Source: Zygnema circumcarinatum SAG 698-1b
Lineage: Eukaryota > Plantae > Zygnematophyceae
DNA: 64,000 nt
Direction: 5' to 3'
NCBI GenBank assembly: GCA_037447605.1
Contig: CM074816.1
Location: 883,873-947,872 of the forward strand
This document shows, piece by piece, positions 28,283 to 62,800 of the stretch (positions within the stretch are counted from its first letter, which is position 1; every line of letters starts with the position of its first letter). The notes beneath the pieces are model-generated. The model saw nothing but the letters and a program-made list of their open reading frames with translations, was not told the origin of the DNA and searched no databases. The position numbers and the translations under genes were made by a program.

Positions 28283-29254
28283 TGTAGCACAAGATAAGTG
28301 GGGTTAAAAGGAGATTGCTGAGCTAGTCGCAGATGCTGTACGGCCACCCGAGCGTCCGTGCTGAAACTGACGTAAGGTTGGGGTGGTGCTGTGGGTCTGC
28401 CTGCAGCATAGAGCCAGGATCCGGGGGATTCAGAGGTACGCGCAGCGGAAGACGTAGGGATTNNNNNNNNNNCCCTTCCTTGGGGACCCTCCTCCCCTGT
28501 CCTCTCCTCGGCTAGTCTCTTAGCTAGGCTTCTAGTGATCATTGGTCATTGAGAGTAATGCAAGGCAGGATAGAGCAAGATAGGGGCTTGGCATAGTGAC
28601 AGCAGAGGGAAAACAGGACACAACTTAGATAAAGGTGGTATTTTGGAAACTCACCCCAGCCAACGGTTGGCTGGGGAATGTCATTACAATGAACGCCTTC
28701 ACCGGGAAATCTTTGTCTAATCGCTGAATGGGACGCCTAAATGCTATCGCAAGAAGAAGACTCTTTCTCTCTCTCTCTCTCTCTATCTATGGCATGGAAC
28801 TCTCTCTCTCCCCTTACTTAGCATCTGTTGCCAGAATCGAAGAGGAAGGAAAAGAAGAAAGAAGAACAAGACAACAAACCACACAGCAAATACAAAATAC
28901 TGCTTCAGCACTAAAAGACAAACAAGCATCACCGACATCCCATCTACTTAACACCCATACCAGATCTTGAGTCTTGCAGTGACAGTCCCCTCGACACAAT
29001 TGCCACCGAGGCCTGACTGACTACGCGGAGCCTCTCGGATAGGTCAATCTAATGATAATCGGGCGCCTTAGGCGTGTTCCTGAGTAGCGCCTTGCTGGAT
29101 GGTGTGTCGCCGCGGGCCGCCAACACATGGCGCCGCCTTCTCGCATCCTCCGTTGGCAGCTCCTGGATTCCGCTGATCCGTGACACGGAAGAGGCATATG
29201 TCAAGTACAATTGAACTGACGCAGATCCGTCGAACGCAGCTCCGTTACGCTACA
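28283..29254 (-). repeat. 3' LTR of gypsy element 1 (TGTAGC...TGTGCTACA)
   Basis: Homologous to 35751-36728, 37435-38433 and 59852-60838; has the terminal inverted repeat TGTAGC/GCTACA. Confidence 0.9.
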
Positions 29255-32200
29255 TCTGTAGCACATGCCGGGGGGGGGAAAACAAGCGCACGCCCCTGCG
29301 GGCGCAATGAAGAAGAGACAAAGGGCATGGAAGGAGCCAATGATGACGTGGACGGGGGGCCGCGTGAGGCGAGTCGGTGGCCGTGTGGAGAAGCTGCCGC
29401 GTACATTCGGCAATGGGGAGTATCGGCATGACCGCATCGGAAGAGACGGCCGGCTGGCGAAATGTTGGCGAAGTGGCAAAAAGTGGCGGGAATTAGAAAT
29501 GGACCAATGAGGAGTCGTCATGGCAGGGGGGGTACGGAGGATGCCGCGCTGTCGGTCGCGAACGGTCAGCCATCGCTGGCAGGAACCGCCACGTGGCCGG
29601 CACGATGGCGCGATCCAGCGCTACGCCAGCCCGTGCCATGAGAGTCAGGGCCCTCCGCAATGGGGGCGCTCAACCCGGGATCTCCACTGGCTCAGCAGAC
29701 TAAGGGGCCCTGACCACGGGGAGCCCGCCAGCCGGTTGACCAATTCCTGAGCCAAATGAGCTTGATGTGGCGCTACCTTGACTGGGCGAGAGGGACTGTG
29801 CGGCGCCTCCTAAGCTCGGTGAGTTGTCGCTCAACGCTCGTCGAGGTGGTGGGAGGCCATGGAATCTAGGGTTTGGAAGTGGAGGGCCAGGAGCTGAAGC
29901 TGGGCGACCCGATCCGGGGGAGGCGCGTCATCGTGGAAGAGGGGCTCAGCAGAGAGGAGGTCAAGGGGAATGCGGGGCTTACGGCCATAGAGGAGCTCGT
30001 AGGGAGAGAAGCCCGTGAGGAGTGGACGGAGGCATCACACGTGAAGACCAGGATGGATCGCGCGAGCCCGCCTGCAGCGCCAGCCGCGGACGCACGCACC
30101 CCCGGTTGCCCGATGGCACGTTCTGCAAGCCGATTCTGCCAGGGGGAGAAGGGGCTCAGAGGTGTGGTGATGACTGTTAAGCTCTGCAGGAGCTAAATGC
30201 CCCTTGTATTTGGTGCCATTGTCAGTGACAGCAGTAGGAGAGATAGTGCGGTGACCATGGCCGCCAGGAGGCGAGCAGAGTGGATGGAGATGCTGAGGTC
30301 CTGCGATGAACTTCTACTCACTTGGTGGTACCTGTCCACGTGAGGAAGACCCGGACAGCCCATAGGGGTGCTGAGCCCTGGGGGATAGAAAGGACGATGT
30401 TCCAGTTCGTGACGCCTCGCATGGGGATCTCACCCATCTCCAGGGGGTTGATGGTTCGGCAGGGAGAAGCGCTTTGTGCGGCTTAACGAGGATGTTTCCG
30501 ATGTAATGGCTTACCGTGCCATGGCAGGCCTGTGATAATAGTGCCTCCCTGGAGGCAGGCGACCATCTCTTCCGCCAAGGCGAACCCCGCTGGCTTGATC
30601 GCAACATCCAGAATCTCCATGCGTTCATTGGGGAAAGGAACAGGAAGGCCAGAGGGGAGGTACAGTATCTGTCCGTCATCATCAACAGAGAAGTGCCGAG
30701 CGCGGCGGAGCAGCCGAGCCCGCTTGGTGTCCGTGACAAAGGGGGGTAATGTGCGGGTCATGACGTAGCGCAGAAGGGAGGAGTCTGAATGGACGTCATT
30801 GGCGCTGGGGAAATGGGGAGGAAGTAAGGGAGCGTCGCCATCGTCATCCATGAGGAGTTCCCACGGATCCGCATGGGGGTGGCCGTGGGTGAAGTCAGGG
30901 TCCTCCCAGCGATGGAGGGTGGTGGCGGTGGCCGGAATATCGATCAGCCCATCTGCGAATAGGACATCATGCAGGGCTTGAGCGGCAATAAAAATCTCAA
31001 TGGGAAGATGCTCAGGGTTCAAGAGGGTGGGTGGAGGGATGGGTTCAGGAACGGCCGGATCGTGACAGAGGAGGGGAGCCGAAGGATTGCGACTGAGGCC
31101 ATCAGCATTGCCGTGACTACGGCCGGGACGGTGAGTGACTTTGAGTACATTGTACTCCTCCAACTTCATCACCCATCGTGCAAACTTAGGGCGTAGGGTA
31201 GCCATAATGTGCAGCCAGGTGAGGGGCATGTGGTCAGTCCGGATGATAACGGGCTGGTAGGCCGTGAAGAGCTTGAACTTCTCGAGTGCCCAGAGGATAG
31301 CCGCGGCCTCACCCTCAGTAGGGCTGTACTTGGTCTCGGTTTCTGAACAAACCCTGCTAGCATAACTGACCGGGTGTTCCCCATCCGAGAATGCTTGACT
31401 GGCCACTGCCCCAAAGCCCGTCTGACTCCAGTCAGCGTCAATAATGGTGGGCAGGGTGGGGTCGAATTGATGCAGACAAGGAGCTATAGGGCACTCTGAG
31501 TGCGCGTGAAGGCCAAATCCTGCCCCGGCTCCATCGGTCTGGGATCTCCGTGCTCTCCAAGGCATGTAGGGGACGTGCAATAAGGGCATAGCCCTTGATG
31601 AACCGGCGATAGAATGAGGTGAGCCCCAAGAAGGACTTGAGCTGAGTGAGGGTCTAGAATTGGCATAAGGAGAAACCCCGTTTCAATTTGTCGAGCTATG
31701 GTTCCAGGCCATCTGATGCGAGGGCGGTGCCTGAGACTGAGTGATCTCTGCGCTGGACTCGGAGCTTTGGGGTGCAATCTTCAAACGTGCACTAATGAGC
31801 TGCGCAGGACTTGGCGTATGTGACCAGGTGGGAGGACCAGTCCTTGCTGTGGAGGGAGGCATCATCCACGTAAGGCTCGCAGAAGGCGCGACAGGGGCCG
31901 AATACTTGGTTGGCCAGGCGCTGGTGAGTCTGGCTGGAATTCTTGAGCCCAAAGGGAAGCACTGTCCACTGCACGAAGCGTGTGGCTGTGCGCAGCCCTG
32001 TCTTGCAGCGATCGGCCTGCCGCAGGGGGATCTGCCAGAAGGCTTTCTGCATGTCAAGTGCCGAGATGATCGACTTATCAGGGGAGACGCCGTGGACAAT
32101 TAGGTCCACATTTGGTAATGTGTAGGGATTCTGACTCCCATTGCATTCAGTTTCCGGAGTCCCCACAGAAGCGAGTGTGCCATCCGGTTTTGCAGCACTG

Positions 32201-35200
32201 GGCTGCTCACGCCCTTCTCCAGGTTCCATCAGTCCTGAGTCGTTTCTGCAGTTTTGACCGCCGCTCCACATCGCCTTTGACGGGCGGAGCGGCAGGGAGT
32301 CATGGTCACCATGGGAGGTCATCCTGGCATCCATATGGTGCTCAATCAGGTGGGTCTTGCCGATGTCAAGTGAATGTCGTGCGAAAACTAGGTGATTTCG
32401 GCGCAGCACTTGTCGTAGTTGAGAATGCTTGATCGTGTCTGAGAGTACTGCTGGCCCCAATCGCATCTGCGCCTCTATTTCCAGCCACTCCTCATCACTG
32501 ATGGTCTCATGGGGGGGAAAGCTGGGTGCAGGTAGCACTGGCGGCAACAGTTCTTCCGTCGACGCACCGAGAGCTGGACTCGGAGAAGAAGGAGGGGGAG
32601 TCTCGTCATCGGTATCAGAATTGGCCGATCCATGAGAAGAATGGGGGCTGCTGACTCGAAATGCATGGTGATTTTGCAGAGACCCGCCGCGCGTGGCGCC
32701 TGGGGAGGGCGGGAGACAGCATCTTTGAGGACCATGGGGAAGGAGCAGCTCGCCCGCAGGAGTACAAGTGCAGCTGACATGCATAAAGTTGATCGTGCTC
32801 CCATTCAATGAGCCAATTTGAGCTGGCTAGGATAGAATAGTGCGAGTGGCCGCCATGGCGCATTCACTGCTGGCTCCCATCCTCACACCGACTACCATTG
32901 TGGCGCTGCCCACCCCTTCACTAAGGCCCCCCCTCAACCCACATATCGGGGAACCGGGCTCGAGCGTCCTTGTCCAACCTGTTTCATCACAGGCCGGCAG
33001 AGGCAACGCGCGCATAGCCCCCGTGTCGATCATGGCTTTGCTGGGATGACCGTTGAGCCATACATTGACGATGATCCGCACGTTGGGCGTTGGGATGAGA
33101 GGGAGGATCTGAATCTGGCGAGGAGGATGGCGAGGGGAGCGGACTGGGTCCGGCGGAGACGCCGTAGCCATGTGGTGGATATCGGGCCGCGAGGGATGTC
33201 TGGAGGACATGCCACTGGAATGGGAGGCCGCAGGTGGCCTCGCAGCGCCAGCTTTTGAACCTACGGCGCACATCACGAGTCGGCACGATGGCGACAAGCA
33301 TGCGAGCCACGTTGCATGTAGTTGATGAACCATGCGTTTAATCAGGAGAGGCCGCTGCCGGGGGGAGTGGTCACGATCGGCTGCTTGGGGGTAGAAACGG
33401 GCTGCTCGAGGACGATGTGGAGGGTTGACGTGCATCTCTTCGGTCGCCGGTGGCGTCGGCTCTGGCTGCGCCGCTGTCGGCTCCTCTTCATTGAGATCTT
33501 CAATTTCCTCCTCAGGCAGGGATCCCAAGGGATGACCCGTGAAGGGAGGGATGACTGAAGTTCTTCCTGACAGGGTGGCTACCGTGGAGCTGTGTCCTTG
33601 AGAACCGCGCGAGACGCAGGAGGATGGGAGGGGATGGGGAGAATGAGGATCGCTTCGGTTGACAGGGAGCCTGCGCAGGGCAGTTGCAATCTCGGCAATC
33701 CGGGCTTGTGCATTAGCTTCAAAAGTGATGGGGGATTCTGACAAAGCCGGTTGAAATGCCGCGGCAACCTGGGCAGTGCGTGATCGGGCAGCAGGATCGG
33801 GCTCAGCACCCAATACGTTTGACAGGGAAGGGGAGTCCATGGGGTGCAGATGGATAGGTGGTCGCTGCAGGATGGTGTAAGCGGGTGAAGGAGGTGGAGG
33901 CGGGCGAAAGGGAGCTGGTGTTCTCGGTGGTGTGGGAGCAGCCGGGAGCATATCCATGAATGTGATCTCTGCAGGTGAGTTCCCTGCTGCTGCCTCTTTC
34001 CCCTTCCGGGCCTTCTCACTTGAGAGTCTCCGCATGCACACACGGGCATCGTGTCCCGTGATCTGGCAGAAGGTGCAGGTCCATGGTCCGCAACGCAGCC
34101 GCGGATTATGATTCAGGCCGCAGGCAAGACACACGCCCTCTGGAACCCCTGCCTCTGTCATCCGACGGCGCAGATCGGCCCTAGCAGCTTCTCTCTCTTC
34201 GGGTGTGCGATCGGAATAAGGTGGAGCCCGATATCCTGGACGAGAAACATCTGGTATGTGAGGATTCACCGCCGGCTCAATGGGATGCGCCGGATCATGA
34301 GGGTATGGGGAAATGTGAAGGGGCTTGATCGCGCTGGCTGACAGCGAGAGGGCTGCACCATAAGGGCTGCCCCCACGTCTGAGCAGGGATGCTGGAGAAG
34401 ATGGCTTGTTTTAGGAAGATGCAGCGAGTGATCACACATGCTGATCCTGTGTCTTCAGGACGCTGCAGAGGCCGACTCTGTTGTGGACCTGGGCGTTCAT
34501 GTAACGTGGTCGCACATGTCGGTTGCCCCTCATCCTTCCTGACGCTCCGCCCGCCCTAACAATGCCTGACCGTGGTGGTCGCTCAGTTTACGAATTGAGG
34601 CGGAGATCCTTCTTGCGATGGCCTTGGAACTACTGACACTTCGAAAAGTCAGGCAAGTTCTCGATTGATCGCCACGGCGCAGTAGTGCGCCGCCTGAATT
34701 CAAAGAGTTGCCTGATCACTGCAGCATTCTACGTAGCGAAGTTGGCTCAGCACAGCTGGTTCGCATTCTAAATCCAACGCTGCTCTGCAGCTGCTGAACG
34801 CGTCCCTTGTCAGGGTGGCGACGACATCTGCTTTGTGCCAGTTTCGGGACAGCTTCCAGTTGACTGCCTCGCCTTCCAGCGCTCCAAGGGCAAGCTTGAT
34901 CCACTGGTCCTCCTTCAGGTCTGCTTGCGCTGCCTTCTCCTCAAGGTGTCTCAGCCAAGACTCTGCATCTTCCTGCTTGCCGGTGAAGCCTCTAGTGATG
35001 ATGCCCGTGGTATCCCTCACCTCACTCTTTTCAGGAATCAAGGCTATCAGTTTTGTCATCACTCTTTTCCATCTGCCGGCAACTGACATTGACTCGTGTG
35101 TCTCCCGCAGGCCGGTTTGAAGTGCAGGGTCCATGCGACCGTCCTGCCCGCCCTGAAGCGCTCGCCTCGGACTGCGGAAATGGGCAAGTGTTAAGCGCAG

Positions 35201-35738
35201 GTGAGGGTGCTCTCATGATTCTTGCTCCGCTGAGTGACGCTGCCCTTGCAGTGCTTGAAGGGACTCCTGGTGTGCTAGTTATCCGATCGACACCCGCTGG
35301 GTCTGCCTCTGCGGGCGTGGGGACCTCAGGTTTGACGCATCTCTCTTCACGCATCGCGGCCGCTGTGGAGTGGGCCCTGGGGGGGGCTCTGCAGCTTGAC
35401 CATCGCGTGCGCACGCGAGGCGAGTTCTGTGGCCATTGTGACTGCGAGGACGGAGTCCGCTGCAACCTTCAATTGACTCCTCATCTGCTCAAGGTAAGCC
35501 AGACCGGTAAGAGTTCTTCGTTATGCCCATCTTCAGCCTCTCTTGACCGCCTCCTTCCTCTGAAATCGAATCCGTCTTGCATTTCCACTCGCCGCTCTTC
35601 TCCCTTGAGGTGCCAAGTCTTCATTTAATACTCATGAAGATCTGCTTGTCCCTCTTGCCGCAGTTCATCCATGGCGGCCGTGCATATGGGTTAGGATCGG
35701 AGCCTCATGTATCAAGATGCATCTGTACTTAACCTATA

Positions 35739-36728
35739 GCCTTGATACCAAGATAAGTGGGGTTAAAGGAGATTGCTGAGTGATTGCAGGATTACCGTGG
35801 ACGGCCACTGGAGCCTTCCCTGACCAAACGCTGACCCGCAAGGTTGGGGTGGTGCCGTGGGCTCGCGCGCACATAGAGCCAGGATCCGGGGATTCAGAGG
35901 TACGCGCAGCGGAGACGTAGGGATTCTGAAGACGCTCCCACCCGCCGCTTGGACTCTAATGCTAAATAGCCCTTCCTTGGGACCCTCCTCCCTGCCCTTC
36001 TCCGCTAGCTTTAGCCAGGCTTCTAGCGATTCACTGGGTTATTCAGAGTAATGCAAGGCAGGATAGAGCAAGATAGGGGCTTGGCATAGTGACAGCAGAG
36101 GGAAAACAGGACACAACTTAGATAAAGGTGGTATTTTGGAAACTCACCCCAGCCAGCGGTTGGCTGGGGAATGTCATTACAATGAAATTGTCTTCTCACT
36201 GAAATCTTTGTCTAACTGGGCTGCAACGGGATGTCTAAAATGTATAATCAGCAAGACATCTTTCTCTCTCTCTCTCTCTCTCTATCTATGGCATGGAATC
36301 TCTCTCTCTCTCCTCACTGAGCATCTGGCTGGCCCCAAAAACTGAAGGAGCAAAAGAAAGAAGAACAAGACAACAAACCACACAGCAAATACAAATACCA
36401 AGCCCAGCACTAAAAGACAAACAAGCATCATTGCATCCCACCCATTAACAATGAGAATAGACCTCAGCCCTGAGCTCATCTTGTTGGCCAACTGCCCACC
36501 AGAGGCCTGACTGACTACCGTGGAGCCTCTGAGAGGCCCAATGAATGACACGCGGCCTGAAGGCGGGTGTTCCCGAGTGCGCCTTGCCGCATGGTGCCGC
36601 GGCCGCCAATAGATGGCGCCGCGCCCTCCACCGCTGGCAGCCGCATCCGCGACCCGCTAACACGGAGGAGGCATATGTCAGTACAACTGAGTTGACGCAC
36701 ATCCGTCACGCAGCTCCGCCACGCTACA
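35739..36728 (-). repeat. 5' LTR and tRNA-iMet PBS of gypsy element 1
   Basis: Starts TGTAGCG at 36728 and ends ...CCCCACTTATCT directly followed by TGGTATCAAGGC, a degenerate TGGTATCAGAGC. Confidence 0.88.
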
Positions 36729-37434
36729 CTGCACGGCTATACAGACATACGGTGAGTACGAACAGCACGAATAACACGGACAGGCACGAATACTTAAGTT
36801 ACGCGGACGCGGATTCCCCAGAGCAGAAAGGTGGTTTTGGCAAATTGGGGCGAAACTTGGGGATGACCTCCTCAGGGCGGGAATACCAGGACGTTGATGC
36901 AGGCCAATGCCTTAACCGCGCGACAGGCGACCAAATTGATTTGGCGTGGTCAATGTCTTGTCTAACACTGTCATTTTTGTCACGAATGTATCAACATCGG
37001 ATGCTGATCGGCAACCATTGGACAACCATTGGATGTATGGTTGACGCTCACTGGTTGGCAACCAGCCGACGTTACATCTATCACCATGGTTGGCAACCAT
37101 TAAATCACTAACCTAGCGAACTGTAAATGCCGTACTACCAATGCGTCATTTTTGCAGTTATTATGGATTGGCTTGTATATTTTTGCCACTTGTATTGAGT
37201 TGACTGTACGAATCCGTATGAATCTGTATGGCATTAGGCTTGTCACATGACAGCTCAATTATGTTATAGTGTCCATGTTGGTCTCCCACACATTTGTGTC
37301 ACTATATCGGTAATGACCCGTTTGTCATTTCACATTTATAGTAACAATGTTATTACATATGTTTTTGCAGTATATCCGTACGACTTTGATACCGTACATT
37401 GTACTTTTTGGGCAGTCGTCACGTGGGTAGGTGT

Positions 37435-39248
37435 TGTAGCACAAGATAAGTGGGGTTAAGAGAAGATCGCCGAAGAAGTTGTAGTGGTGCCGTGACGCTA
37501 CCCGCTACACCAAAAAGCTCTAAAACTAATGAAGGCTAGTTGGTGCTGGGTCTGCCTCGCAGCATAGAGCCAGGATCCGGGATCTTGTGGAGGTACGCCA
37601 AGAAGCGAAGACGTGATCCTGAAGATGTTCCCACCGGCGGCTGGACCCGATGCGCAAAGAGCCCTTCCTTGGGGGCTCTCTTCCCCTGTCCTCTCCTCGG
37701 CTATTCTCTTAGCTAGGCTTCTAGTTATCATTGGTCATTGGGCGGAGCATAAGGCAGGATTTCACAAGATGGTAGCTTGGCATAGTGACAACAAAGGGAA
37801 AACAGGACTCAACTTAGATAAAGGTTGTATTTTGGAAAGTCACCCCAGCCAGCGGTTGGCTGGGGATTGTCATTACAATGAAAGTATCTTCTCACTGAAA
37901 TCTTTGTCTGGCTGGGCTGAATGGGATGTCTAAATGCTATCAGCAAGAAGACTCTTTCTTCTCTCTATGCAATGGAAATCCTCTCACTCTCTCATACTAG
38001 CATCTCAAAGGCCGGAGTCAAGAGAGGCAGAAAAGAAGAACAAGACAACAAACCACACAGCAAATACAAATATTTCAAGCCCAGCACTAAAAGACAAACA
38101 AGCATCAATGTACATCCCATCTACTTAACACCGACAATAGATCTTGAGCTTCCAAGAGTGACAGCCCCTGATTGGCCAATCGCCCAATCGAGGCCTGACT
38201 ACAATTCACGCGGAGCCTAAGGATAGGTCAACAAATGACAATCGGCGTGCATTATGCGGCAAGCTGAAAGTGCGCCTTGCTGGCTGGTGTGTTGTTCCTC
38301 CGTGCCAACACCTGGCGCCGCTTCTCAAGATTTCCGCCGCCACTCGATCAGCCGTCCGCGACACCGGTGATAGAGTATGGTAAGTACAACCGAACGGACG
38401 CTGATCCGCCGAATCCAGCTCCAGCACGCTACATCTGTAGCACATGCCTGGGAAAAATAAGCGCACGCGCAACGGCGAAGCAGACAAAGCGGGCAGGGAG
38501 GAGCCACGATGACGTGGACGGAGCCGCTGGCTGCTGGCCGTGGTGGGAGAAGCTTCCTCGCATATTCGCAATAATGGGGAGTATCGGCAGACCGAGGTGG
38601 AGGAGAGACTACCGCTGGCGCAAATGTGGGCTAAGGGGCAAAAAGTGGCTGAAGTGCGTAATTGGCTGAACGTAGAATTGGACCAATGAGGAGTCGTCAT
38701 GGCAGGGGGGGTACGGAGGAGTCCGCGCTGTCGGTCGCAAACGGTCAGCCATCGCGGGGGGGAGGAACCGCTGACGTGGCGGCCCGAATGTCGATCCAGT
38801 GTGAACGCCAGCGCCGGGCGTTGCCACTAGAGTCAGGGCCTTCCGAAAATGATGGCCCAACCTGGGATCTCCGACGGACCGACACAAATGAAGGGGCCCA
38901 ACCACGGAAAGGCCCGCTGAGTCGGTTTACGGTGATCTCGAGCCAAATGAGCCGCATCGGCGCTACCTGATCGGGCGGAAGAGCAACATGGGCCTGGCCG
39001 GCCCCAAAGTCGGGTGAGTTGTCGCCAGGCACGCTGCTCGAGGTGGTGGGAGGCCATGGAATCTAGGGTTTGGAAGCGCAGGGCAAGGAGCTGAAGGTGG
39101 GCGACCCGATCCGGGGGAGGCGCGTCATCGTAGAAGAGGGGCTCAGCAGACAGGAGGTCAAGGGGAATGCGGGGCTTACGGCCACAGGGAGCTCAGAGGG
39201 AGAGAAGCCGCTGGAGGAGTGAATGTGAGGTGTCAGACGCGGAAGACC
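37435..39248 (-). mobile_element. Truncated gypsy copy of the same family: 3' internal region and 3' LTR (37435-38433)
   Basis: 38434-39248 matches about 29255-30050 of element 1, and the LTR ends TGTGCTACA. Homology stops where the copia LTR begins. Confidence 0.88.
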
Positions 39249-40693
39249 GTTGAGCCCCGATCTGCCGGCCGCCCGGGCGCCACCACGCCTCCATTGGAAC
39301 TCCGTTCTACCTCCTCGATGAACATTATCTTCACTCTCTCACACTTATCTCACTTCACCATAGCCCATAACCCCGCCAGTAATGAACGCTAGAGACGAGC
39401 ACGCCGAAATCACAATAATTTGTGAGAGTATAGAGAAAGCTCACGGCTCTAAAACTCCTTTATAAGAATAAATACCCACATGAAGCTCTCCCTCTCACTA
39501 GCTACTTCTCCTTACTGGCCTTGCAACACACAAAGGCAACAAAGAACACTACCCAGAAAGCAAAAGTAATGTATCAAAGTCAATTTCGGACCACAAAGAG
39601 TCTAATGTGGTTATCCCACATAACAAAGCTAAACCCTATATACGCTGGCGTACGCAGTTACGCGACATCTTCCTTGTTGACCAATGTCACCGCCACGCCG
39701 TCCTCATGCTCAAAGAGTCGGCACGCTGCTCAACATCCACTATGTCTTTCAGAAACTTACGCCAGCACCGTAATTCAGTCGTCGTCCGCATAGCTCGCCC
39801 ATCTGAACTTGTCGCCCGCTTCGAAGCGCAGAACTTCCGGGCCGCCGCCCTATCGCCCGCCGAATGCTACAAGATGTTCAAGCTACAAGACTGCATACTA
39901 TTTCTCCAAGGGCTGCCCGCGACGAAATTCCGCTGCCGTGATTTCAAGGCTGTTACACTTGTCCGCTGTATTGCTTACTGCTCCCTCCGTAGTTGACTCC
40001 GGGCTACAGCCTCGCTGGATCAAGCATTTCCAGGGTCTGACGCGTTCCTACTTAATATCACCTATCCTCCCGGTACCGGTGCCGCATCTGCCACCTATTT
40101 GGCCCCGACCAGATTTCCTAGAACACTACTAGCAGATCTCATGCTTCCCAATCGAGATCACAACAGCAGGTGAACCCGCATAAATGTCTAACTATAGCAC
40201 ACTAACACTAACAATCCCCCTCTTGGGCCTCAGTTCCTCATGGGCCCTAGCCCAATGAGTCTGCTATTCACTAGTAGCGTCTCACCACTAACTCCTTTAG
40301 TCAACATATCCGCAGCCTGCTCCTTCGTCCCCACGAACTTCACAACAATCATCCCCTCCTCTACCAATTCTCGCACATAATGGTATTGCACTCTAATGTG
40401 CTTTGTCCTCTTATGAAACACAGGGTTTTCAACAAGAGCTATGGACGACTGATTATCCGTGAACAAAGTCAAGGGACGTTGTGGCCTCTTACACTCATCA
40501 AAGAAATGTTGGAACCAAACTCCCTCCTTCTCACGCGCGACATGCTCCCCATGTACTCTTCGTGCTAGACAACGCGAATCAACTCGTGAGCTTCGGAAGC
40601 TCCATGAGATCGCCTCCACCGCCGCCGCACACAACCGAGGTCGATCGCCGGCGCGTCCACGCCACCTCCCCGCCAGAGTCGGGTGTATCCCAT
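39249..40693 (-). mobile_element. Ty1/copia 3' fragment: RNase H, PPT and 3' LTR (about 40213-39249)
   Basis: LFTDNQSSIALVENPVFHKRTKHIRVQYHYVRELV..EQAADMLTKG. PPT AAGAGGGGGA followed by TGTTAG at 40213. TATA-like CTTATAAAGG inside the LTR. The fragment is cut by the N-gap at 40694. Confidence 0.85.
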
Positions 40694-40793
40694 NNNNNNN
40701 NNNNNNNNNNNNNNNNNNNNNNNNNNNNNNNNNNNNNNNNNNNNNNNNNNNNNNNNNNNNNNNNNNNNNNNNNNNNNNNNNNNNNNNNNNNNN
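40694..40793. other. Assembly gap (about 100 N); shorter gaps of about 10 N near 5926, 16516, 28463 and 57851
   Basis: Seen directly. Confidence 0.98.
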
Positions 40794-40954
40794 TCCCTGA
40801 CGGCGCATAAGCCGAACTCTCTGCTTCTGTCCCAAACGTCTTCCAGGGTGGCTCAGTGACCTGAGCTGCGTAACAGAGAAAGAGTCTATACAAAGGTAAT
40901 TCAATAAATTCCTTCTCTATGGCATAACGCCCTACCCCCTCCCCCCAACTCCTC

Positions 40955-40996
<42 letters not shown>

Positions 40997-41407
40997 TCTC
41001 CCTCCCCCTCTCTCTCTCTCTCGCGCGCGCTCTCTCTCACATTATGTTTTCCAACTCAGCTACCCAGTCTCCTCCCCTTCTCAGTACTCCAGCACGGCAG
41101 CAGCATTGTTCCTTCAGAGGTAACACCTTGCAATTTTCTGTACAACGGAAGACGGTTCCTGCCTTAATCCTCCCTTTAACCAGCCAAAGTCCTGACCTTT
41201 TTCCAGGCCCTAACCACTTACGCCCCCGTCTTTTAAAGCCTTGCGTTCAAAATGTGGCTGCAGACTCTCTGCGCCTCACATTCACGGCCTCAACCGTTCA
41301 TGCAGCCTTCGGGCGAACCATTCGCATTCGGGGGCCTGCAGTACTGCTCCCAGTTCATTCGGTTCCGTTCTGTTCCCTTTCACTGACAAGGAACGGGCAT
41401 GCACCGC

Positions 41408-43965: not shown

Positions 43966-44365
43966 CGTGCCTGCCCCCACACTCCAAATTTACATTTCAC
44001 CTTCACTTCCCTGAACCCAGATGATCCACGGTTCCGTACGGTACGGGGCCCATCCTGACCCCCGATCCTGAACCCTCCGCCTTACAGCCCCGCGCCAAAC
44101 ACAAAATATCGGGGGGATCGCGCAATGGCCCAAAATCCGGCGGGCCTCCGCGGCACCTCATTGGCTGCACCGACATTTTTTTTTGTCTGTCCGGCGGTGC
44201 AGCCCCTCCAGCCCGCGCTCTGGGCAACCCTAAACACGTGCGTCCTGCCACGTGTCACCGCCTCCTGCGCCCTCTCGTCCGTCCCGTCCCACCTCCGACT
44301 CCCTCTCTCTCTCTCTCAATCTCTCGCTCACACTCTCTCTCTCTGCTCGGCAGCCGCGCACAGCC

Positions 44366-49900: not shown

Positions 49901-50954
49901 CACATATGTGGGGGCGCCGTATCAAATTTCTTTCAGTGAGTCCGGGCAGGCAAAACGTTTCCTTTTGCTTGACCGGGATTGGAAGGTCAGCTGCGCAAAT
50001 GTTGTCCCAAATCGAAATTTTTGTGGTGTGCTAAGCAGACAGAGTTCAAAGGGAGGGAGAGGGAGTGAGAGAAACAGCGAAAGAGAGAGAGAGGGAGGGA
50101 GGGAGGGTCAGAAAGAGGTGCTTTAAGTGCCTTTGGGAACAAATGGCTCAAAGAGCTCAACTGCTTTGCAGGCATTCCAAAATCTTTTAGAGCTTTCTCC
50201 GTAGATTTTCTTGTTCTTCTGGTGATTTTCGTGTGTTTAGGGTCTCCCCTAAACAAAAAGTGAAAAGAAGAGAAAGGGGTTTCGGTCTTTGTGCTTTACC
50301 CAGTCAATTCAGCATTATACTCAAGCTTGTTCTTTATGCGTCCATCGAACCTTCTATTTTTTTCCTTTTTTTGTGAGGAGGGGCTCTGTACAGACACCTC
50401 ATCCGTAGCAATATCCTAATACGCACAAATTTCTATTTCATTGTGTTCTTTATTTCCCCTTTTTTTCCCAGAAAGTGAGCGATATTCCCATTGACTTGGG
50501 CCCCCGCCATTTCACTCTCCCGCCAGATGGCGTTCTGCCATTGGAGGAATTCCGAGAGGGAGATTTTGTGCGATGGCAGCCTAACAAAGAGCTCGAAACT
50601 GACCTTTTGAAAAAGCGCACGGTATTTTTCTTTTCTTTTTTTTGTTATCCTCGATATTTGTTGCATTTTTTTTCCTTTTTCATGTTTACCGCGTAAGTCG
50701 GAGGGTGACTATTACGAAGCTGTTTTTTTGCTGTTTTTTTTTTTTTTTTTTATTTATTTATTTATTTGGCTCGATAGAGGCTTGCTCTCAGTACGGCATG
50801 ATGCATTGGTTTTGTAGGAGAAGAGTGAAAGGACGTCTGTTTGTTGGGTCAACGCAGGAATGGCTTCGGGAAAAGGGAGTCCGAGTGGAGATACTTAATA
50901 CTCCTGCAATAACAAAGCCTCGAATAGCCTCTGCAGAGCATATGGTGCTCTCTC

Positions 50955-51005
<51 letters not shown>

Positions 51006-53609: not shown

Positions 53610-53645
<36 letters not shown>

Positions 53646-56600
53646 GCGTAGTGTTTAGAAGCCGTTCCACTGACGGCGTCACATGTGTTGGCAGGACGAG
53701 CTGAGTGAGGTGGCGGTGCTGGACACGTGGGCGGCCGCAAAGGACAAAAGCTCCAAGGCGCTGCGCGAGGCTCGGACAGCTGTCAGCGCGTTAGAGGGCG
53801 CCCTCAAGGAGCTGCACCGCCAGACGCTCACTCTCACGGCCAAGGTGCTCAACCTAATCTAACCCTGGCCTGGCCAGCCTGGCCTGGCCTGGCCTGGCCT
53901 GGCCTGGCCTGGCCTGGCCTGGCCTGGCCTGGCCTGGCCTGGCCTAGCCTGGCCTGGCCTGGCCTGGCCTGGCCTGGCCTGGCCTGGCCTGGCCTGGCCT
54001 GGCCTGGCCTGGCCTGGCCTGGCCTGGCCTGGCCTGGCCTGGCCTGGCCTGGCCTGGCCTGGCCTGGCCTGGCCTGGCCTGGCCTGGCCTGGCCTGGCCT
54101 GGCCTGGCCTGGCCTGGCCTGGCCTGGCCTGGCCTGGCCTGGCCTAACCCCTAACCCTGACCCTAACCCTAACCTTAACCCTAACCCTAACCCTAACCCT
54201 AACCCTATCCATGAACTCCTGACCTAACCCTAACTCTAACCCCTAACGCTAACCCTAACCCTGAAAGTAACCCTAACCCTAATTCGTAACCCTAAGCCTA
54301 ACCCTAATCATGAACCCTTGAACTAAACCTAACCCTAACCCTAATCCCTAACCCGTCGACCCTAATTCTGAACCCTAACTATGAACCCTGACCTAACACT
54401 AACCCTAACGCTGATTTCGGACCCTAATAATCTTAAACCCTCATCCTAACCCTAATCCTTATTCTAAACCCTGAACCCTAACCCTGACTCTAACCAATCC
54501 TAACCCTAACCTCAACGCTAACCCGAACTTTAACCCTAACCATGAACACTAACCCGAACCTTAACCCGAACCCTAACCCTAACCCTACCCTAACCCTAAC
54601 CCTAAACATGAACTCTAACCCTAACCCTTATCCTAACCCTAACCCTACCGTGGACCCTAACCCTCACTCTAATGCTGAAACCTACCTAGTCGTATAGTAT
54701 TATTAGGGTGCAAGCTTTTAAACCGGCTAATTTTGACGAAGTAAAAAGATGCCTTCGCAGGTGGAGGAATGTCAGCAATTGGAGAACCAATGGGAGGCTG
54801 ACAGGTGTGCAGCAATGTTGTACCTTAGTGCAGGATTTGTCCATTTCTGAGCAATTTGTTGCCCCGCTATGCTCTGTAGGGTGTGGAGATACTTAAGGCC
54901 TTCAGCAGCTTAAGGAGCTGCTTGGAGTTCGAAAATGTCATTCCCTAAAAACCCTAAAACCCCTAAAGAATTCCATTTTAGAGCTTCACTCACATTCAGC
55001 TTTTAGGTGACAAGCAAACCATCTCGTTCGAATGCAGGATGAACAGAATGGTTGAACTTGAGAAGCAGTTGAATGCCCTTGACAAGGAACTGAGTTCCTG
55101 GTCGGAATGCTGCAAGGAGCAGCTGCATAGTGTGAAGTCAAGGCTGGAGGATTGGGAGAGAGAGGAGCAGGAACAGTACTATGCTGAAGGAGGTGACTTT
55201 GCTGACAGCGATAACGACAAAATAACTGCTCTGAAGGAGCGATCGGAGGAATCATTTAGGCGTTTCACTGAGGCTGATGTGAAGGTGCTAAATTCGGTGT
55301 TTCAAGTCCTTAGAGATTTAAGGTTTTGGGGAAAGGGAGGGGAGGGCGAGATGTTGGAGATTTGGCAGGATCTGAGCACTTGCAACTGTTGTAGCTGAAT
55401 TGCCGAATATCTCACTGACAACTATCCACTTTATGTCGCAGTTGCTTTAGACTCATTGCAAAAAATTGGAGTCCTGAAACTAGGGTTCCCAATCACATGA
55501 CTCTGAATCTCGACCATAAATGTAACATGTGAAGTAGTAGTAATAGTAGTCGTACCCCCAATACCGCAAACACTGCAAACCTCCTCCGACTTCTGCAAGC
55601 CTTTCCAATTTTTTTTTTTTTTTTTTTTTATTTCTCCTCCTTTCCTCTCTGCCGCAGATGCACGAGCTGCAGCGGAGGTGGCAGGAGGAGGTCCTTTCTC
55701 TCTCTGCCTTTCAGCAGCGAACTGCGGGCCAGGCTCTATGTGCCACCTGCCAGCAGCCAATCAGCGCTGGCCACGTGGCCTCCACAATGCAGACCATGCA
55801 GGAACGCGTGCAGACGGCCGAGCACGCATATAGGGACCAACTGCAGGTCTGTTTCTATGGGTTTTTGGTTTCTATCGTTTTTAGGATTCATATGGATTTA
55901 GGTATATATGGCTTCCTTTTCTCTTAGATGCTGGGAGTCAGCCCACTGCAGGACATCCTTTCATGGAAAATTCTCTATTTCTGCCTCTCCTCTTGCTCGT
56001 CAAGCACAATCACAACGTGTGTCTCTATCTCACAACCTGTGATAGTAATGCAGAGCTAAAAAAGGTGTGAAAACCCCAAAAATCTTAGATACTTCGTGTG
56101 ATGTTTATAGTCCGGCCTGGTCATGAGCTGAATAATTCTGCCATTCTCATCCATTCATGGTTTTCTTGTTGGTTTTTTTCAGAAAGTAAACGCAGCCAAA
56201 GCAGAGCAGGCTGCCGCCCGCCATTGCCTGCAGGCCGCCATGAGGGAGGAGAGGGAGGCCGCAGATCTCCAGCGTGCGGCCGCCATGGATCGGCAGCTTA
56301 AGGTCTGTGCCATTCTGAACCCCTACCTTAAGCCCTTTCGAATTTGCTGCAAATGTTAGGGTCTTATGATCGGGACTTTTCCTACAGATCCACCTCGGAT
56401 TCGTCAAATCCGAAGGTGGGACATTTAGTTTTTCTCCTCGTTTTAATTCTTTCTTTCTTTCTTTCTTTGTCGATCTTGTGAGTTTGCAGGCTCAGAGCCG
56501 GAGAAGAACTTTGCAAGGGATGCAGTTCCTTGTCAATTCTGCAACGCAGCTGTTGGACTCCGTTCAGATTTTTCTCACACGAAACTCATCGAGTGGACCT

Positions 56601-58562
56601 TTGAAGGCTGAGGAGGGTGAGGCAAGGGAGGAAGAAAGGGTCTGTGATTGAGAAAATTGAGAAGATAGTGAGCAAGGTGGGAATAGAGAGAGAAGAGGGA
56701 GAGTCAGAGGGAAGTGTGTGGGGAGAGAGTGAGCCGAGGGAGAGGACAGGGACTGAGAAGGAGCAGAGAAGGTGACAAGTGCGAGAGTGAGAGTGAGCAA
56801 GTGGCCATTTGAAGTTTGTCTCTGGGAGAGTGAATGCTTTTCGCCATGTTTCGACTGTATGCATCTTCTGACAACAACGTGGTTCTTATCTGAGTTGAAC
56901 AATCTCTTGTCAATCTCTACCCAACAATCTTACATCCAAAGTATATTTCTATTGGCCCCTTTCTCAGTTCTACCTCTTTTGGCTTGTCTTCCCACAGAGT
57001 TGGCTTCAAAAAATGTTCCGCCTCTCTTATCCGGCTCGGTCAGCTCCAATTTTATTTCGGAAGAATCCACGGAGGAAGTTATGAAAGCTCTTGAATTTGC
57101 TTTGACCTCCGGTCGCAGAAAATTCGAACTGTCGCAACAGAAAGAGGCGGAGAAGGGCTCTCTTCTTAGTGAGAAAAATCCTTACACTGCGGAGAGAGTA
57201 GTGCTGCAGAACCTCTGTGAGCGCTCACTGTTGGATGTGAGAGAGAAGGAGGAGCAGTGGGAGAGGGAGCAGAGAGCGGCCGAGGACTTAAAGGAGGTCG
57301 ACAATGCGTTTGGGTTGACCGGAGTGCAGGTGAGGGGAAAGTTGTGGACTAACAAAAGTAACAAAAAATAGCTTTTCAAACCACGCGTTTTCGTAGGGTT
57401 AAGAGTTTATTGGTTTTTAGTTTGAGCTTTATTTTACTGAAGCGACGCTCTGATCATTTCTCCCACTTTCTGTAGGCCAACACATAATCTGAATCCTTGT
57501 ATGAAAATTACGTCAAAGCGTCCAATTTCAAACCCCAGAAACCACACAAACATGCAATGTAAATTTCTCAGCATCACTCTCAAATCTTTCCGTTCCCCCT
57601 ACCTCTCTCCCTCTCTCTCCACCGTTCGCTTTGTCTTCTCCTCTCCCTCCCTCCCGCCCTCCCTTCCTCCCTCCCTTCCTCCCACCCCCTCTCGTCCTGC
57701 CTTCCTCACTCCCTCTCTCCCTCCCCCTCTCCGCCTCGCCCTCCCCCTCTCCGTCCTTCCCTCCTTCCCTCGCTCTCCCCCCCCCCCGCCCTCCTTTCCC
57801 CGCTCGCCTTGCCTTCATCATTCTCTCCATTCCTCCCTCCCCATGTTACCNNNNNNNNNNCCTCCCTCCCTCCCTCCCTCCCTCCCTCGCAGAGCTACGT
57901 CCTGGAGGAAGGCTTGGCGGAGCTGCAGGAGCGAGTGGCCAGCTATTTGGCAGTCCTCTCGGGCGGGGCCCTCAGTCTGCGGCTCGCCCCCGCGCGGCCC
58001 CTCAAGGGAGGGAGAGCGAGCGTGGAGAGGATCCGCAAGTCGGCCGTGGCCCGCCTCGAGGACGGCCGGGAGGTGGACCGCTCCGTACGGCAGCTCAGCG
58101 GGGGAGAGCAGAGGAGGATGGCGCTCGCCCTCTCTCTCGCCTATTCGGACTTAGCCGCAGAGAGGACCGGGTTCTCTTGCAACCTTCTCGTGCTTGACGA
58201 AGTTCTGCAGGTGGGTTGGAAACCCTTTTTTTTTTTAGGTAAAGGTTTTGGTTGAGCGACGGTTTTGAGCTTGGATAGAGTGAGGGAAGGGGTTCGGGGG
58301 GAGGCAATGTTGGGAGTGGGAGAGGGAGGATTAACAGAGGAGGGAGGGCTGGGGGTGGGTCACGTGGCAGCATTTGGATGCAGAGGGGCGTGGTCGCGTG
58401 GCCTCCATTCTGAAGGAGCTCCCGCAGAGCACAGTGCTCGTGGTTTCGCAGGCGCACAGCGACCTTGTGAGCACCTTCGACCGCGTGGACTGGGTGGTGA
58501 AGGAGAGGAACTGCGCTACCGTGCTGCTGGCAGAGGAGGCGGGAAATAGGCCTGTGGTGTAG
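46940..58562 (+). CDS. Fused SbcD/Mre11-like phosphoesterase and SbcC/Rad50-like SMC ATPase with organelle-targeting N-terminus
   Basis: Nuclease motifs: VFSDLH, LFLGDFWH, TGNHDQ, FCHVD, YSGHYHKPH, YVGAPYQ. In-phase join (51326 to 52039) into the ATPase: Walker A DCNGAGKTAL, coiled coil, hook CATCQQPI, signature LSGGEQRR, Walker B LLVLDEVLQHLD. Stop at 58562. Confidence 0.9.
53864..54145. repeat. (CCTGG)n pentamer array, about 56 units, intronic
   Basis: Seen directly; nearly perfect, with two variant units. Confidence 0.95.
54143..54672 (-). repeat. Degenerate (CCCTAA)n interstitial telomere-like array, intronic
   Basis: Seen directly; 6-mer ccctaa/ccctga/ccgaa variants abutting the CCTGG array. 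Confidence 0.92.
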
Positions 58563-59192
58563 AAGCGTGGAAGTCAGGGGTTATAGAGTGTAATTTTTTT
58601 TGAACCTGTTAAGGGTATGGAGGTTAGGGAATTGAATCTGGAAGATCATGCAAAGGCTCGAAAACGGTATTCTGCTGGGAAGGTTTCGTAAGCCATGGCA
58701 TGCTGAGACGTGGAGGCGGAAGGGATGGGTTCGGCGAGATGGGCTTTCCCTGTTTTCCACGTGCCAAATTGTACTTATACTTTTCAACAATAATGCATTG
58801 TAATGATGTCGTGCAAATACGATGGGCATGCAATTCATGAGTCTCGCAATTTCCCATACTGTGGGGTTGCCGTTATTTCTATTTCATTATTTCTATGTAG
58901 ATGCCCCTTTGAAGGCTCACGAACCCTTCGACAACACAGGACTCAAGTGCCCATGAACATCTTTTGAAACGGCAGGTAAAGAACCGGAAAACATACGGCT
59001 TTTCTTTGGACTTGCAAACAAGCTGAATCTATCTTCGAAATTGACAGAGCTGAGAACATCCTTTACTCGAGGGATGAGTCCCACTCTCCCCGAAGAAGCC
59101 CCGCTCTTCCACAATCCGCGGCGAACCACCCATCATCGTCGCAGTGCGACCTCCGTTTGGCATCGCCACATTCGCCGTTCATACATTCCACA

Positions 59193-59470
59193 GATCGGAC
59201 CATTAGACAAACCAGTCGACTGGTTGGCAACCAGTGGTTGCGGACCGAAACAACCATTCGACTGGTTGCCAACCAGTGGCTCAGGACCGAAACAACCATT
59301 CGACTGGTTTGGAACCAGTGGATGCCACTGGTTGGCAACCATTCGACTGGTTTGGAACCAGTGGATGCCACTGGTTGGCAACCAGTCGACTGGTTGCGAA
59401 CCAGTGGCGCAGGACTGAAACAACCATTCGACTGGTTCGGAACCAGTGATCCAATGGTTGGCAACCATTG
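59193..59470. repeat. Array of nested palindromes (AACCAGTCGACTGGTT, GGTTGGCAACC, AACCAGTGGATGCCACTGGTT)
   Basis: Seen directly. It begins with GATCGGACCAT, which resembles the 43363 terminus. Related motifs occur at about 37005-37100. Confidence 0.85.
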
Positions 59471-59851
59471 AATTTCTGAAATTATGCCTTTTTGCAAAAA
59501 TGGGCCGTATGTGTTTTTTGGTGGGTTGCCAACCGTTGACAACTACAGTCTAATCACGTTATAGTGACACTGTTTATAAGAACAGCATGGATATACTGAC
59601 TTTTTTTCCGGGAACGGAATTGCACCACTGCAGATCCTGCGCCAGTAGTGACGCCATTACGGATATAATGACGTTGAAAAACCCTGATTGTTACTATATA
59701 TTCAAAATGTCGATATTATCCACCCACGTATTGGAATATGCGTTACAAATATATTTACGACCGTACACATTATCGACTAATATCGTCAGATATCGACTTG
59801 ACCGTACATATCAAGTTGTCCGTACACATGCTCACTAGGGTTCGTACACAC

Positions 59852-62800
59852 TGTAGCGTAACGGAGCTGCGTTCGACGGATCCGCGTCCGTTCAGTTGTA
59901 CTTGCCATACTCCTATGCAGTGTCACGGACCGGCCTGATCCAGGAGTGGCCGACGGAAAATGCGAGAAGGCGGCGCCAGGTGTTGGCGGCCCACGGAACA
60001 GCACACCAGCCAGCAAGGCGCACTCGGAACGCCGCATAATGCCGCCGATTGTCATTTGTTGACCTATCATAAGGCTCCACGTAGTTAGTCAGGCCTCTCA
60101 GTGGGCAGTTGGCCAATCAGGGGCTGTCACTGCTAAGGCTCAAGATCTATTGTCAGTGTTAAGTAGATGGGATGTCAGTGATGCTTGTTTGTCTTTTAGT
60201 GCTGGGCTTAGTATTTGTATTTGCTGTGTGGTTTGTTGTCTTGTTCTTCTTTTCTGCCTCTTCAGCTCCAGCAACAGATGCTAAGTATGAGAGAGAGAGA
60301 GAGAGTTCCATTGCATAGAGAGAAAGAGAAAGAGTCTTCTTGCTGATAGCATTTAGACATCCCATTCAGCCCAGCCAGACAAAGATTTCAGTGAGAAGAT
60401 ACTTTCATTGTAATGACAATCCCCGGCCAACCGCTGGCTGGGGTGACTTTCCAAAATACAACCTTTATCTAAGTTGAATCCTGTTTTCCCTTTGTTGTCA
60501 CTATGCCAAGCTACCATCTTGTGAAATCCTGCCTTATGCTCCGCCCAATGACCAATGATAACTAGAAGCCTAGCTAAGAGACTAGCCGAGGAGAGGGCAG
60601 GGGAAGAGAGCCCCCAAGGAAGGGCTCTTTGCGCATCGGGTCCAGCCGCCGGTGGGAACATCTTCAGGATCCCTACGTCTTCCGCTGCGCGTACCTCTGA
60701 ATCCCCCGGATCCTGGCTCTATGCTGCAGGCAGACCCACAGCACCAACCCAACCCTTCATTAGTTTCAGCACGGACGCGCGGGTGGCCGTACAGCACCTG
60801 CAACTAGCTCAGCAGTCTTCTCTTAACCCCACTTATCTTGGTATCAGAGCTGAAGGTTTTGCAGATCCACGTACCTTGATACGTGAGGCTGCCGATCCTG
60901 TGACCCGTGTCACAGCCGCCATGGATGAAGAGCTGCAACAAGAGGGACAAGCAGATCTTCATGAATTTTCAGATGAAGACTTAAGACATCAAGAAGAGCA
61001 GACGATAGGAAATCCAAGGACGGATTCAGACTCAGAGGAAGAAGCAATCAGAGAGACTAAAGATGGGCATCACAAAGAGAACCCTTATCCCAGTTTGGCT
61101 TACCTTGAGCAGATCGAGTCGATTGAAGAACTGCAGCGACTCCATCTAGGCAGTGATGGCCATAGGTTTCGCTGGCGATATGCACGCAGGATGATCAAGC
61201 TTGCAGCCTGCCCAGTTGCTGTAACGGCCGCAGATGCCGTGAAGAGAGGAGTTCCGTTCGAACCTTGAGATCCCTTTGCGGCCCGCCAAGACAAAACCCG
61301 CAAAGATGTCGAGTCGAGTAACTACTCCGCCAGGAGTCCCCTGCGAGGCTGCTCAGAGGCGGCACGCAGTCCTCAAGCAAAGCAGATCACAAAAGCACCC
61401 TCACCTCCCGGCGTTCACAACTTACCCATCCGGCAGCCCCAGGCGAGGGGCTTCAGGGGCAAGGGTAGGACGATCGCCAGGACCCTCCAGCTTTCGCACC
61501 AACCTGCAGAGAAGAACACGAATCAGATCTGAGTTTCCCAGCAAGATGGAAGAGATAATGACCAAACTGATAGCAATGATTCCTGAAAAGAGTGAGGTGA
61601 GGGATACCACGGGCATCACACGGAGGCTTCACCGGCAGCAAAGATCAGGAGCGTGGCTGCGACACCTTGAGGAAGAGGCCACAGCGGCAAGCCTGAAGGA
61701 CCCATCATCAGTTGGCTTTAGAAGCACTGGAAGGAGAGGCAGTGAGCTGAAGCTCTGGAAGCTGGCACAGCGCGGATCTCGTCAGCTCGCAGGGACACAT
61801 TCAGCAGCTTCAAGCAGCAGCACGATTTCAATGGATCAGCTGTGCTGAGCCAACTCGCTACATAAAATGCAGTGATGAGCGGCTGTTGAATTCATCAGAC
61901 GTTTTCTGCACATGGCAACTATACGAAATTTCTATGACTTTCCCCGAAGCCTCAGTGAGTCCGCAAGGCCATGGCCGAGAAGGGTCTCCACCTCCGATCG
62001 TGAGTGCGCGACAACCCACCAGCGAGATGCCCAGGCCTTGTTAGAAAGGGCGGAGCAAATTCAGAAGGAGTCAAGGGAGGGCGAGCCAGACATGCAAGCC
62101 ACATTCATGACAGCACAGATCCACGACAAGATCGGCTCTACCAGCAGTTCCTGAAGACACAGAATCAGCAGTTGTCTGATCCCTATGCTACATCTTCTAG
62201 GAACAAGCCGTCTTTCTCCGGCATCCCTGCTCAAGACGTCCGGTCAGCCCCTGTGGTGCAGCCTCTGGCTATAGCCAGCACGACCAAGCCCCTTCCCCTT
62301 TCCCCATACCCTCATGATCCTGCACATCCCATTGAGCCGTCGGTGAATCCTCACATCCCAGATGTTTCTCCAGGATCTCAAGCCTCCTATCCTGGCAGCC
62401 CCGAAGGAGAGAAGCTGCAGGCCAATGGCCGTGGGATGGCAGAGGCAGGAGCTCCAAGAGGGCGTCTCTCTAGCCTTGACCTCAAATCGTGATCCGCAGA
62501 TTCCCATTTCCAACCATGATCCTGCACCTTCTCAGATCCCAAACGTGAGTCTCCGTGTATGCCTAGAGAACTGAGTGAGAAGGCCGGGAAGGGGAGATAC
62601 AGCGCGGGAGCTTCAGGCTCCAGGGGTCACTTCATGGATATGCTCCCGGCTACTCCCACACCGCCGAGAACTCCAGCTCCCTTTCGCCCGCCTCCACCTC
62701 CTTCACCCGCTTACACCATCCTGCAACGTCCGCCTATCCACCTGCACCCCATGGACTCCCCTTCCCTGACAAACGTATTGGGTGCTGAGCCCGATCCTGC

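Follow-up and report, generated by a model that had tools for sequence, protein, structure and literature searches.

A Ty3/gypsy family of Zygnema circumcarinatum with split-repeat ends and a palindromic end junction in place of a polypurine tract

In a 64-kb stretch of the Zygnema circumcarinatum SAG 698-1b genome (contig CM074816.1, positions 883,873 to 947,872; hereafter the window), we describe a Ty3/gypsy retrotransposon family whose 5' and 3' long terminal repeats (LTRs) are unequal. The 9-mer TGTGCTACA, which we call B, stands at the right end of each 3' LTR and again just before that LTR, and is missing from the 5' LTRs, where the rest of the LTR (A) runs directly into the primer binding site (PBS). 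The family therefore has the layout A-PBS-internal-B-GA-A-B, and this split-end layout is a real, conserved feature. We propose, with a probability of roughly 0.5, that the ends of the reverse transcript would be joined, most simply into a circle carrying two LTRs (2-LTR circle), and then cut by the element's own integrase at a palindrome built into the element. Under this proposal, and sharing its probability, the integration termini TGTAGC...GCTACA would be offset by 9–11 bp from the termini of reverse transcription.

The ends of the family form split direct repeats

Self-comparison of the window located four LTR copies of ~1 kb, which belong to three partial or whole elements. The first (el1) lies on the minus strand (36728-28283) and has two LTRs. 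The second (el2), also on the minus strand (39248-37435), consists of only the final 800 bp of the interior and the 3' LTR, and the third (el3), on the plus strand, begins with its 5' LTR at 59852 and has an interior that reaches the window end. The LTR copies are 71–88% alike and the interiors ~78% alike.

Both 5' LTRs, in el1 (35751-36728, A only, starting TGTAGCG) and in el3 (59852-60838, A only), end in ...AACCCCACTTATCT (...CTTATCT) with no terminal CA and pass at once into the PBS. This site is TGGTATCAAGGC in el1 (35739-35750), presumably a decayed form of the initiator tRNA-Met (tRNA-iMet) type, and TGGTATCAGAGC in el3 (60839-60850), a site of the canonical tRNA-iMet type that we take to be the complement of the tRNA-iMet 3' end. 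The two 3' LTRs, in el1 (A at 28292-29254) and in el2 (A at 37444-38433, gap-free), reach the same shared end and then continue with nine extra bases, the terminal copy of B (28283-28291 in el1 and 37435-37443 in el2), before giving way to unrelated flanking DNA, which begins CAGGCT in el1. Instead of equal LTRs bounded by TG...CA, we thus find that both 5' LTRs lack the last 9 bp that are present in both 3' LTRs. Those same bases reappear upstream of each 3' LTR in the arrangement GGCA-TGTGCTACA-GA-TGTAGCG (29265-29249 and 38444-38428), in which an internal copy of B (29265-29257 in el1 and 38444-38436 in el2) is followed by a GA spacer (29256-29255 and 38435-38434, respectively; all on the minus strand).

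Exact copies of B occur four times in the 64 kb, all at the four places just described, where by our own estimate ~0.5 exact matches would arise by chance; a shuffle control, which counts matches with at most one mismatch and not exact matches, gave 12 found against 9.3 expected. At the two internal junctions, B, the spacer and the start of the LTR make up a perfect 14-nt palindrome, GCTACAGATGTAGC (GCTACA-GA-TGTAGC, 6+2+6), which is confined to these positions (29262-29249 and 38441-38428). With up to two mismatches 0.27 occurrences of this palindrome are expected, and none of 100 shuffles reached 4. Terminal CA is the end used by DDE integrases, and inverted-repeat ends of the form TGTAGC...GCTACA, with their terminal CA, arise in this family only when B is counted.

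A polypurine tract was not found, in that a scan of the 700 nt upstream of either 3' LTR gave no run of at least 8 purines, and indeed the last 25 nt before each 3' LTR are T/C-rich. The 23-nt block GGCA-B-GA-TGTAGCGT is identical between el1 and el2, in surrounding DNA that is 78% alike, and the final 18 nt are invariant in all four LTRs, for which the mean column identity is 81%. Because these parts are invariant while the rest is 71–88% alike, the termini and the junction are under selection in diverging subfamilies and are no frozen accidents.

The initial annotation of this stretch had described the LTR ends, the PBS and the copies of B, and every position and motif that it gave for them is present in the sequence. 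The layout that it proposed is borne out at four ends of three diverged copies, and its statement that no polypurine tract precedes the 3' LTRs agrees with our scan. It had also raised the concern that the ends might be assembly chimeras; the end structure of el2 is gap-free, and only the 3' LTR of el1 holds a gap, which leaves its end motifs unaffected.

Several other features of the ends were recorded. When the leader and the B junction were folded as RNA, neither did better than shuffled sequences (z −1.6 to +0.5). The PBS can pair with a downstream CTTGATAC motif that mimics a tRNA 3' end (a PBS/anti-PBS hairpin; 60839-60885 and 35750-35700), and this fold too is no better than shuffles. 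Every LTR carries a conserved perfect hairpin, CCCCAGCCA-ACCG-(C/T)-TGGCTGGGG, within a block that is 99% conserved (60421-60445, 37840-37864, 36150-36175 and 28650-28675), and ~150 nt upstream of this hairpin lies a (GA)n tract, the sole long purine run of the element.

An empty site places B inside the element

We compared the region with Logan contigs from four public runs of the same organism, placed on 35600-39300 at 80% likeness; the contigs that cover the family are unitigs of 100–200 nt, and the results given here refer to the contigs listed. The DNA adjoining the 3' end of el2 (37284-37434) is a repeat in its own right. In contigs of this flank repeat from three runs, the match ends exactly at 37434, one base outside B, and the contigs continue with GTACGAACCCTAGGG..., and so the boundary between 37434 and 37435 is seen in uninterrupted copies of the repeat. 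The reverse complement of the continuation is the sequence that precedes the 5' LTR of el3, ...CTAGGGTTCGTACACAC|TGTAGCG. The empty site reads GGGTTCGTAC-ACAC-CTACCC. It holds no B, and ACAC is found on both sides of the insertion, in the 3' flank of el2 (37431-37434, minus strand) and in the 5' flank of el3 (59848-59851, plus strand), where the target repeat is the same as at 37431-37434.

Because the empty site lacks B, B is element DNA and not target DNA, and the presence of ACAC on both sides suggests that the target was cut with a 4-bp stagger, as for gypsy integrases. The empty-site contigs that show B to be element DNA, and the putative 4-bp ACAC target-site duplication outside B, are new in this analysis, and together they support an insertion that looks integrase-type, with the element cut at TGTAGC...GCTACA. 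The two partial elements el2 and el3 may be one insertion that was split by inversion or by mis-scaffolding at a 100-N gap, or they may be two insertions at the same site; the boundary at B holds whether they are one or two.

The DNA on both sides of the el2/el3 site (37284-37434 and 59700-59851) is an AT-rich dispersed repeat with a word depth in the thousands. It has inverted arms bearing CCGTAC/GTACGG and looks like a miniature inverted-repeat transposable element (MITE). A tandem array with a period of ~42 bp is found nearby, at 59210-59470.

Assembly gaps and mosaic LTRs

A gap of 10 N (28463-28472) lies inside the 3' LTR of el1, 170 nt from the LTR end. Some 35–45 nt (approximately) are missing there, and both sides are colinear with the other LTRs. 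The likeness of this LTR to that of el3 rises from 82% to 93.5% across the gap, and the two sides, the outer one being a U5-B-flank piece, may come from different copies, which would explain an el1 without a clean duplication. The gap ruins the target-duplication test for el1 and leaves the end motifs intact. In el2, the whole stretch internal-B-GA-LTR-B-flank (39248-37350) is gap-free. Neither of the gaps at 40694-40793 (100 N), in a copia-like RNase H fragment past the broken end of el2, and at 57851-57860, 2 kb before el3, touches an LTR end. The copia-like fragment is the C-terminus of a copia-type RNase H (…TDNQSSIALVENPVFHKRTKHI…) on the minus strand (40230-40904), in an open reading frame (ORF) that crosses the 100-N scaffold gap; since the ORF spans this gap, the scaffold join falls within a repeat and is possibly incorrect.

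The LTRs have a mosaic make-up of subfamily blocks. Those of el2 and el3 are 96–100% alike in the middle and 77–85% alike at both ends, transversions being about as frequent as transitions. In el1, variants in the middle (alignment columns 331-830) are common to both LTRs, and the U5 part of the el1 3' LTR is closest to el3. Such mosaics are consistent with recombination among subfamilies, or with polishing that drew on reads of other copies.

Coding content and abundance of the family

The internal region of el1 (29266-35738, minus strand) is broken by frameshifts and stops, and its coding order is a gag-like part (about 34700-35134), a zinc knuckle and the protease motif DTGA (32827-34269), the Pfam domains RVT_1 (31792-32808, E=1.3e-13) and RT_RNaseH (30483-31589, E=6e-28), and what is probably a decayed DDE integrase core. 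The integrase-core remnant (about 30313-29834) has the motifs TDNG and SPYELLYGR and gave 100-aa tblastn matches to integrase cores with E values of 0.002–0.02. An integrase profile of our own gave E=1e-7 for 29834-30034, but this profile was built from sequences that match that same piece and the result is partly circular. In el2, the remnant of the internal 3' end (38445-39248), which is cut off at 39248, corresponds to the C-terminal part of the integrase and is 78% like el1; in el3, the leader and gag/protease region (60851-64000), also 78% like el1, leaves the window. All three copies are full of stops and frameshifts. We found no tyrosine recombinase domain or ORF in any ORF or stop-free piece of the window, and the window has neither a tRNA gene nor a second LTR family that could be used as an internal control.

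The family is extremely abundant, with summed word depths of 1e4–1e5 in the conserved LTR blocks among the Logan contigs. Searches for closer relatives, by exhaustive protein search and by word index, gave only generic gypsy polyproteins at 35–44% identity, and two metagenome scans yielded 0 matches, either to a U5-B 23-mer or to an invariant 30-mer of the LTR. The elements are one high-copy Ty3/gypsy family of a streptophyte green alga.

At 35872 in the U5 of el1 (corresponding to 60724-60874 in el3), a single contig of run X20, which is only presumed to be RNA, has ...CTATG of U5 directly followed by the leader motif CTTGATACGTGAGG. Some 151 nt, among them the end of U5 and the PBS, are skipped, and the exact position of the joint is uncertain. 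The skipped stretch reads GT...AG in antisense, and an antisense spliced transcript is possible. Two long microsatellite-like arrays are found elsewhere in the window, at 15301-15884 (period ~12 bp) and at 53807-54210 (period exactly 10 bp).

A proposed route of replication and integration

In ordinary reverse transcription, both copies of U5 derive from a single minus-strand strong-stop DNA, and the PBS fixes the 5' end of that DNA. With this one source for U5, B cannot reach the right end of the element by ordinary reverse transcription. The genomic RNA, we infer, would read R-U5-PBS...B-GA-U3-R and would hold B once, before U3. All the schemes that appear workable share one requirement, namely that U5 must become joined to B-GA-U3 and that the product must then be cut at CA|GA|TG.

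The route that we favor would satisfy this through joining of the cDNA ends. Reverse transcription would be primed by tRNA-iMet directly after ...CTTATCT, and the right end of the cDNA would stop there, with no CA. The left end would start at B (TGTGCTACA-GA-TGTAGC...), 11 bp outside the integrated left terminus. The two cDNA ends would then be joined, most simply as a 2-LTR circle and conceivably as a concatemer, making U5-B-GA-U3, and the element's DDE integrase would cut both strands of the palindrome at CA|GA|TG to give two 3'-recessed CA ends with 2-nt overhangs, and these would be exactly the ends, already processed, that an integrase inserts. In the last step both would be inserted in concert, with duplication of 4 bp of the target. 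The net outcome would be that B is shifted to the right end and GA is lost, and that the internal B-GA-U3 is kept as the template for the next round. The stricter claim, that end-joined cDNA (a 2-LTR circle or its equivalent) is an obligatory intermediate and that the integrase acts as a site-specific nuclease on a built-in palindrome, we put forward tentatively, as a little short of an even chance.

The initial annotation had argued that standard reverse transcription cannot add B at the right end, and this reasoning is sound, given that U5 comes from one strong-stop DNA. It had also read the family as a tRNA-primed gypsy element with DDE integrase remnants and not as a tyrosine-recombinase element, in line with the gene order, the primer site and the lack of a recombinase domain in the window. 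Its overall interpretation is thus supported in part: the layout, the type of element and the logic of reverse transcription stand, and the mechanism that it envisaged, with a plus-strand start at B, a circle and an integrase cut, is retained here in conditional form.

A number of observations weigh against the joined-ends route. The 4-bp duplication rests on two half elements, el2 and el3, in opposite orientation, and the flanks of el1, GCAG and CAGG, share only the 3-bp CAG, with the el1 3' end lying past the gap. One of the two 3' ends, that of el1, adjoins an assembly gap, the LTRs are mosaic, and every copy in the window is old and broken. The evidence for the integrase is weak, with no Pfam family found in seven stop-free pieces of the integrase region. 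The U5-B-GA-U3 joint itself (a step back of ~1009) is absent among the contigs listed from the four runs, which with unitigs of this length is a weak test; the contigs listed also show no B inserted at the border between 5' LTR and PBS, an absence of equally little weight. The identical internal palindrome would also have to escape the integrase, and only the bases to the left of B differ between the two contexts; the right-hand recognition site may include the conserved TTAACCCCACTTATCT that stands to the left of B. Finally, no recognizable sequence was found for a plus-strand primer ending at GGCA|TGTG.

Alternative explanations

Several simpler routes were worked through and rejected on the ends that they predict. 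A tRNA copy retained at the right end would leave TGGTATCA there instead of B; cutting a 1-LTR circle at its palindrome would yield LTR-PBS-internal-B and no 3' LTR; if priming took place at the (GA)n tract within the LTR, the 5' LTR would be truncated; and a read-through RNA self-primed by B would give a hairpin. For a GT-AG intron that restores B to the 5' LTR there is no fitting acceptor, and B as target sequence is excluded by the empty site, which lacks it.

It is conceivable that some other replication step rebuilds the right-hand B, for example a read-through genomic RNA carrying U5-B or a second primer on B, and the palindrome would then have another role, such as plus-strand initiation. 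Such a step would be in keeping with the finding that there is no purine-run plus-strand primer within 700 nt of the 3' LTRs, and with the one possible RNA contig that shows unexpected processing across U5 and the PBS, but the variants that we worked through lead to a form with a single LTR, to a hairpin or to a B placed on the left, and none gives A...B-GA-A-B, and we think this explanation rather unlikely. Alternatively, reverse transcriptase might make U5-B-GA-U3 by template switching, with no circle. The plus strand would pass the U5 end, copy 1–2 tRNA bases (TG) and, through the microhomology that these provide, switch onto the minus-strand copy of ...CA-TG-TGCTACA-GA-U3, and integrase would then trim the right end at B's CA. 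The first two bases are TG in the primer site as well as in B, which makes the join ambiguous by 0–2 nt, and an exact, reproducible joint would be explained without a precise plus-strand start at B, with a normal left end on which GA would be the usual 2-nt extension. However, two nucleotides are very little homology, the extended part would be a tail of single-stranded DNA, and the integrase would have to cleave far from the end. We know of no such tailed cDNA form for gypsy elements, and we consider template switching distinctly unlikely.

Retrotransposons that use a tyrosine recombinase occur in green algae, and a recombinase that inserts a circle, in the mode of PAT, Ngaro, TOC and kangaroo, would be another way to arrive at such ends. 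The A1...B1-A2-B2 split direct repeats of PAT, TOC, kangaroo, Ngaro and VIPER (PMC4157794) are identical in form and repeat order to those described here, and in both cases the internal B-A junction is the only site that holds a complete end-to-end join. Those elements, however, have a tyrosine recombinase, no tRNA primer site and no target duplication, whereas this family has probable DDE integrase-core remnants in a gypsy-like gene order, a tRNA primer site, a putative 4-bp target duplication that would fit a DDE enzyme and a B of only 9 bp, and no recombinase ORF or domain was found in the window; we regard insertion by a recombinase as very improbable. The same can be said of an artefact or coincidence, whether an assembly chimera at repeats, B as a site-specific target sequence, or chance. 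The 10-N gap in one 3' LTR, with its jump in likeness, and the mosaic LTRs, perhaps partly due to polishing with reads of other copies, speak for such an origin, but three diverged copies share the structure at four ends, with no gap between interior and flank in one of these copies, the empty site lacks B, and the exact 9-mers are confined to the predicted places. The joined-ends route with an integrase cut thus remains the explanation that we prefer.

Discussion

The family is like canonical Ty3/gypsy elements (Metaviridae) in its gag-protease-RT-RNase H-integrase order (RT, reverse transcriptase), its RT_RNaseH domain and its tRNA-iMet primer site next to the 5' LTR, and also in its ~1-kb LTRs, its putative short target duplication and, once B is counted, its TG...CA termini. 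It differs from them in that the 5' LTR lacks its last 9 bp, including the CA, and in that those 9 bp stand before the 3' LTR, at the position of the polypurine tract. In contrast to canonical elements, it has no polypurine tract, and its integrated ends cannot be the same as the ends of the reverse transcript.

The integrase of the foamy virus PFV cleaves the palindromic LTR-LTR junction of 2-LTR circles, in which two nucleotides stand between CA and TG (PMC1180852), and the integrase of HIV-1 cuts such a palindrome in vitro (PMC1905944). It has been argued that, when the HIV polypurine tract is lost, plus strands start farther upstream and circles are favored (PMC5974467). The junction described here is like these retroviral 2-LTR junctions in being a CA-NN-TG palindrome, in which a cut on both strands gives two 3'-processed ends in one step, and the PFV spacer is likewise 2 nt. 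In retroviruses, however, ligation creates the palindrome, and linear DNA can integrate even when it is lacking. In this family the element already contains the palindrome, ligation would take place 9 bp to the left of it, and a right end that has not been joined carries no CA, which would make the joined form obligatory. Our survey of the open-access literature, which by its scope is no proof, found no description of an LTR element with a DDE integrase whose ends are split or which lacks a polypurine tract.

It is the textbook view that linear cDNA is the substrate for integration and that 2-LTR circles are dead ends. If the proposed route is true, a successful, high-copy family with no integrase site on its unjoined right end would indicate that a joined intermediate can be productive, and nature would here provide an instance of the circle-junction model of retroviral integration, long since abandoned, the att model reportedly put forward by Panganiban and Temin in 1984. 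The family would also link, in function, the LTR elements with the tyrosine-recombinase elements that have split repeats, and would offer a natural system in which to study how integrase cleaves palindromic junctions and how the plus strand is primed where a polypurine tract is missing. Standard programs for finding LTR elements look for LTRs of equal extent, TG...CA ends, a polypurine tract and a duplication that adjoins the repeat on its outer side, and because this family departs from these expectations it would be mis-delimited or discarded, and the repeat annotation of streptophyte algal genomes may be biased as a result.

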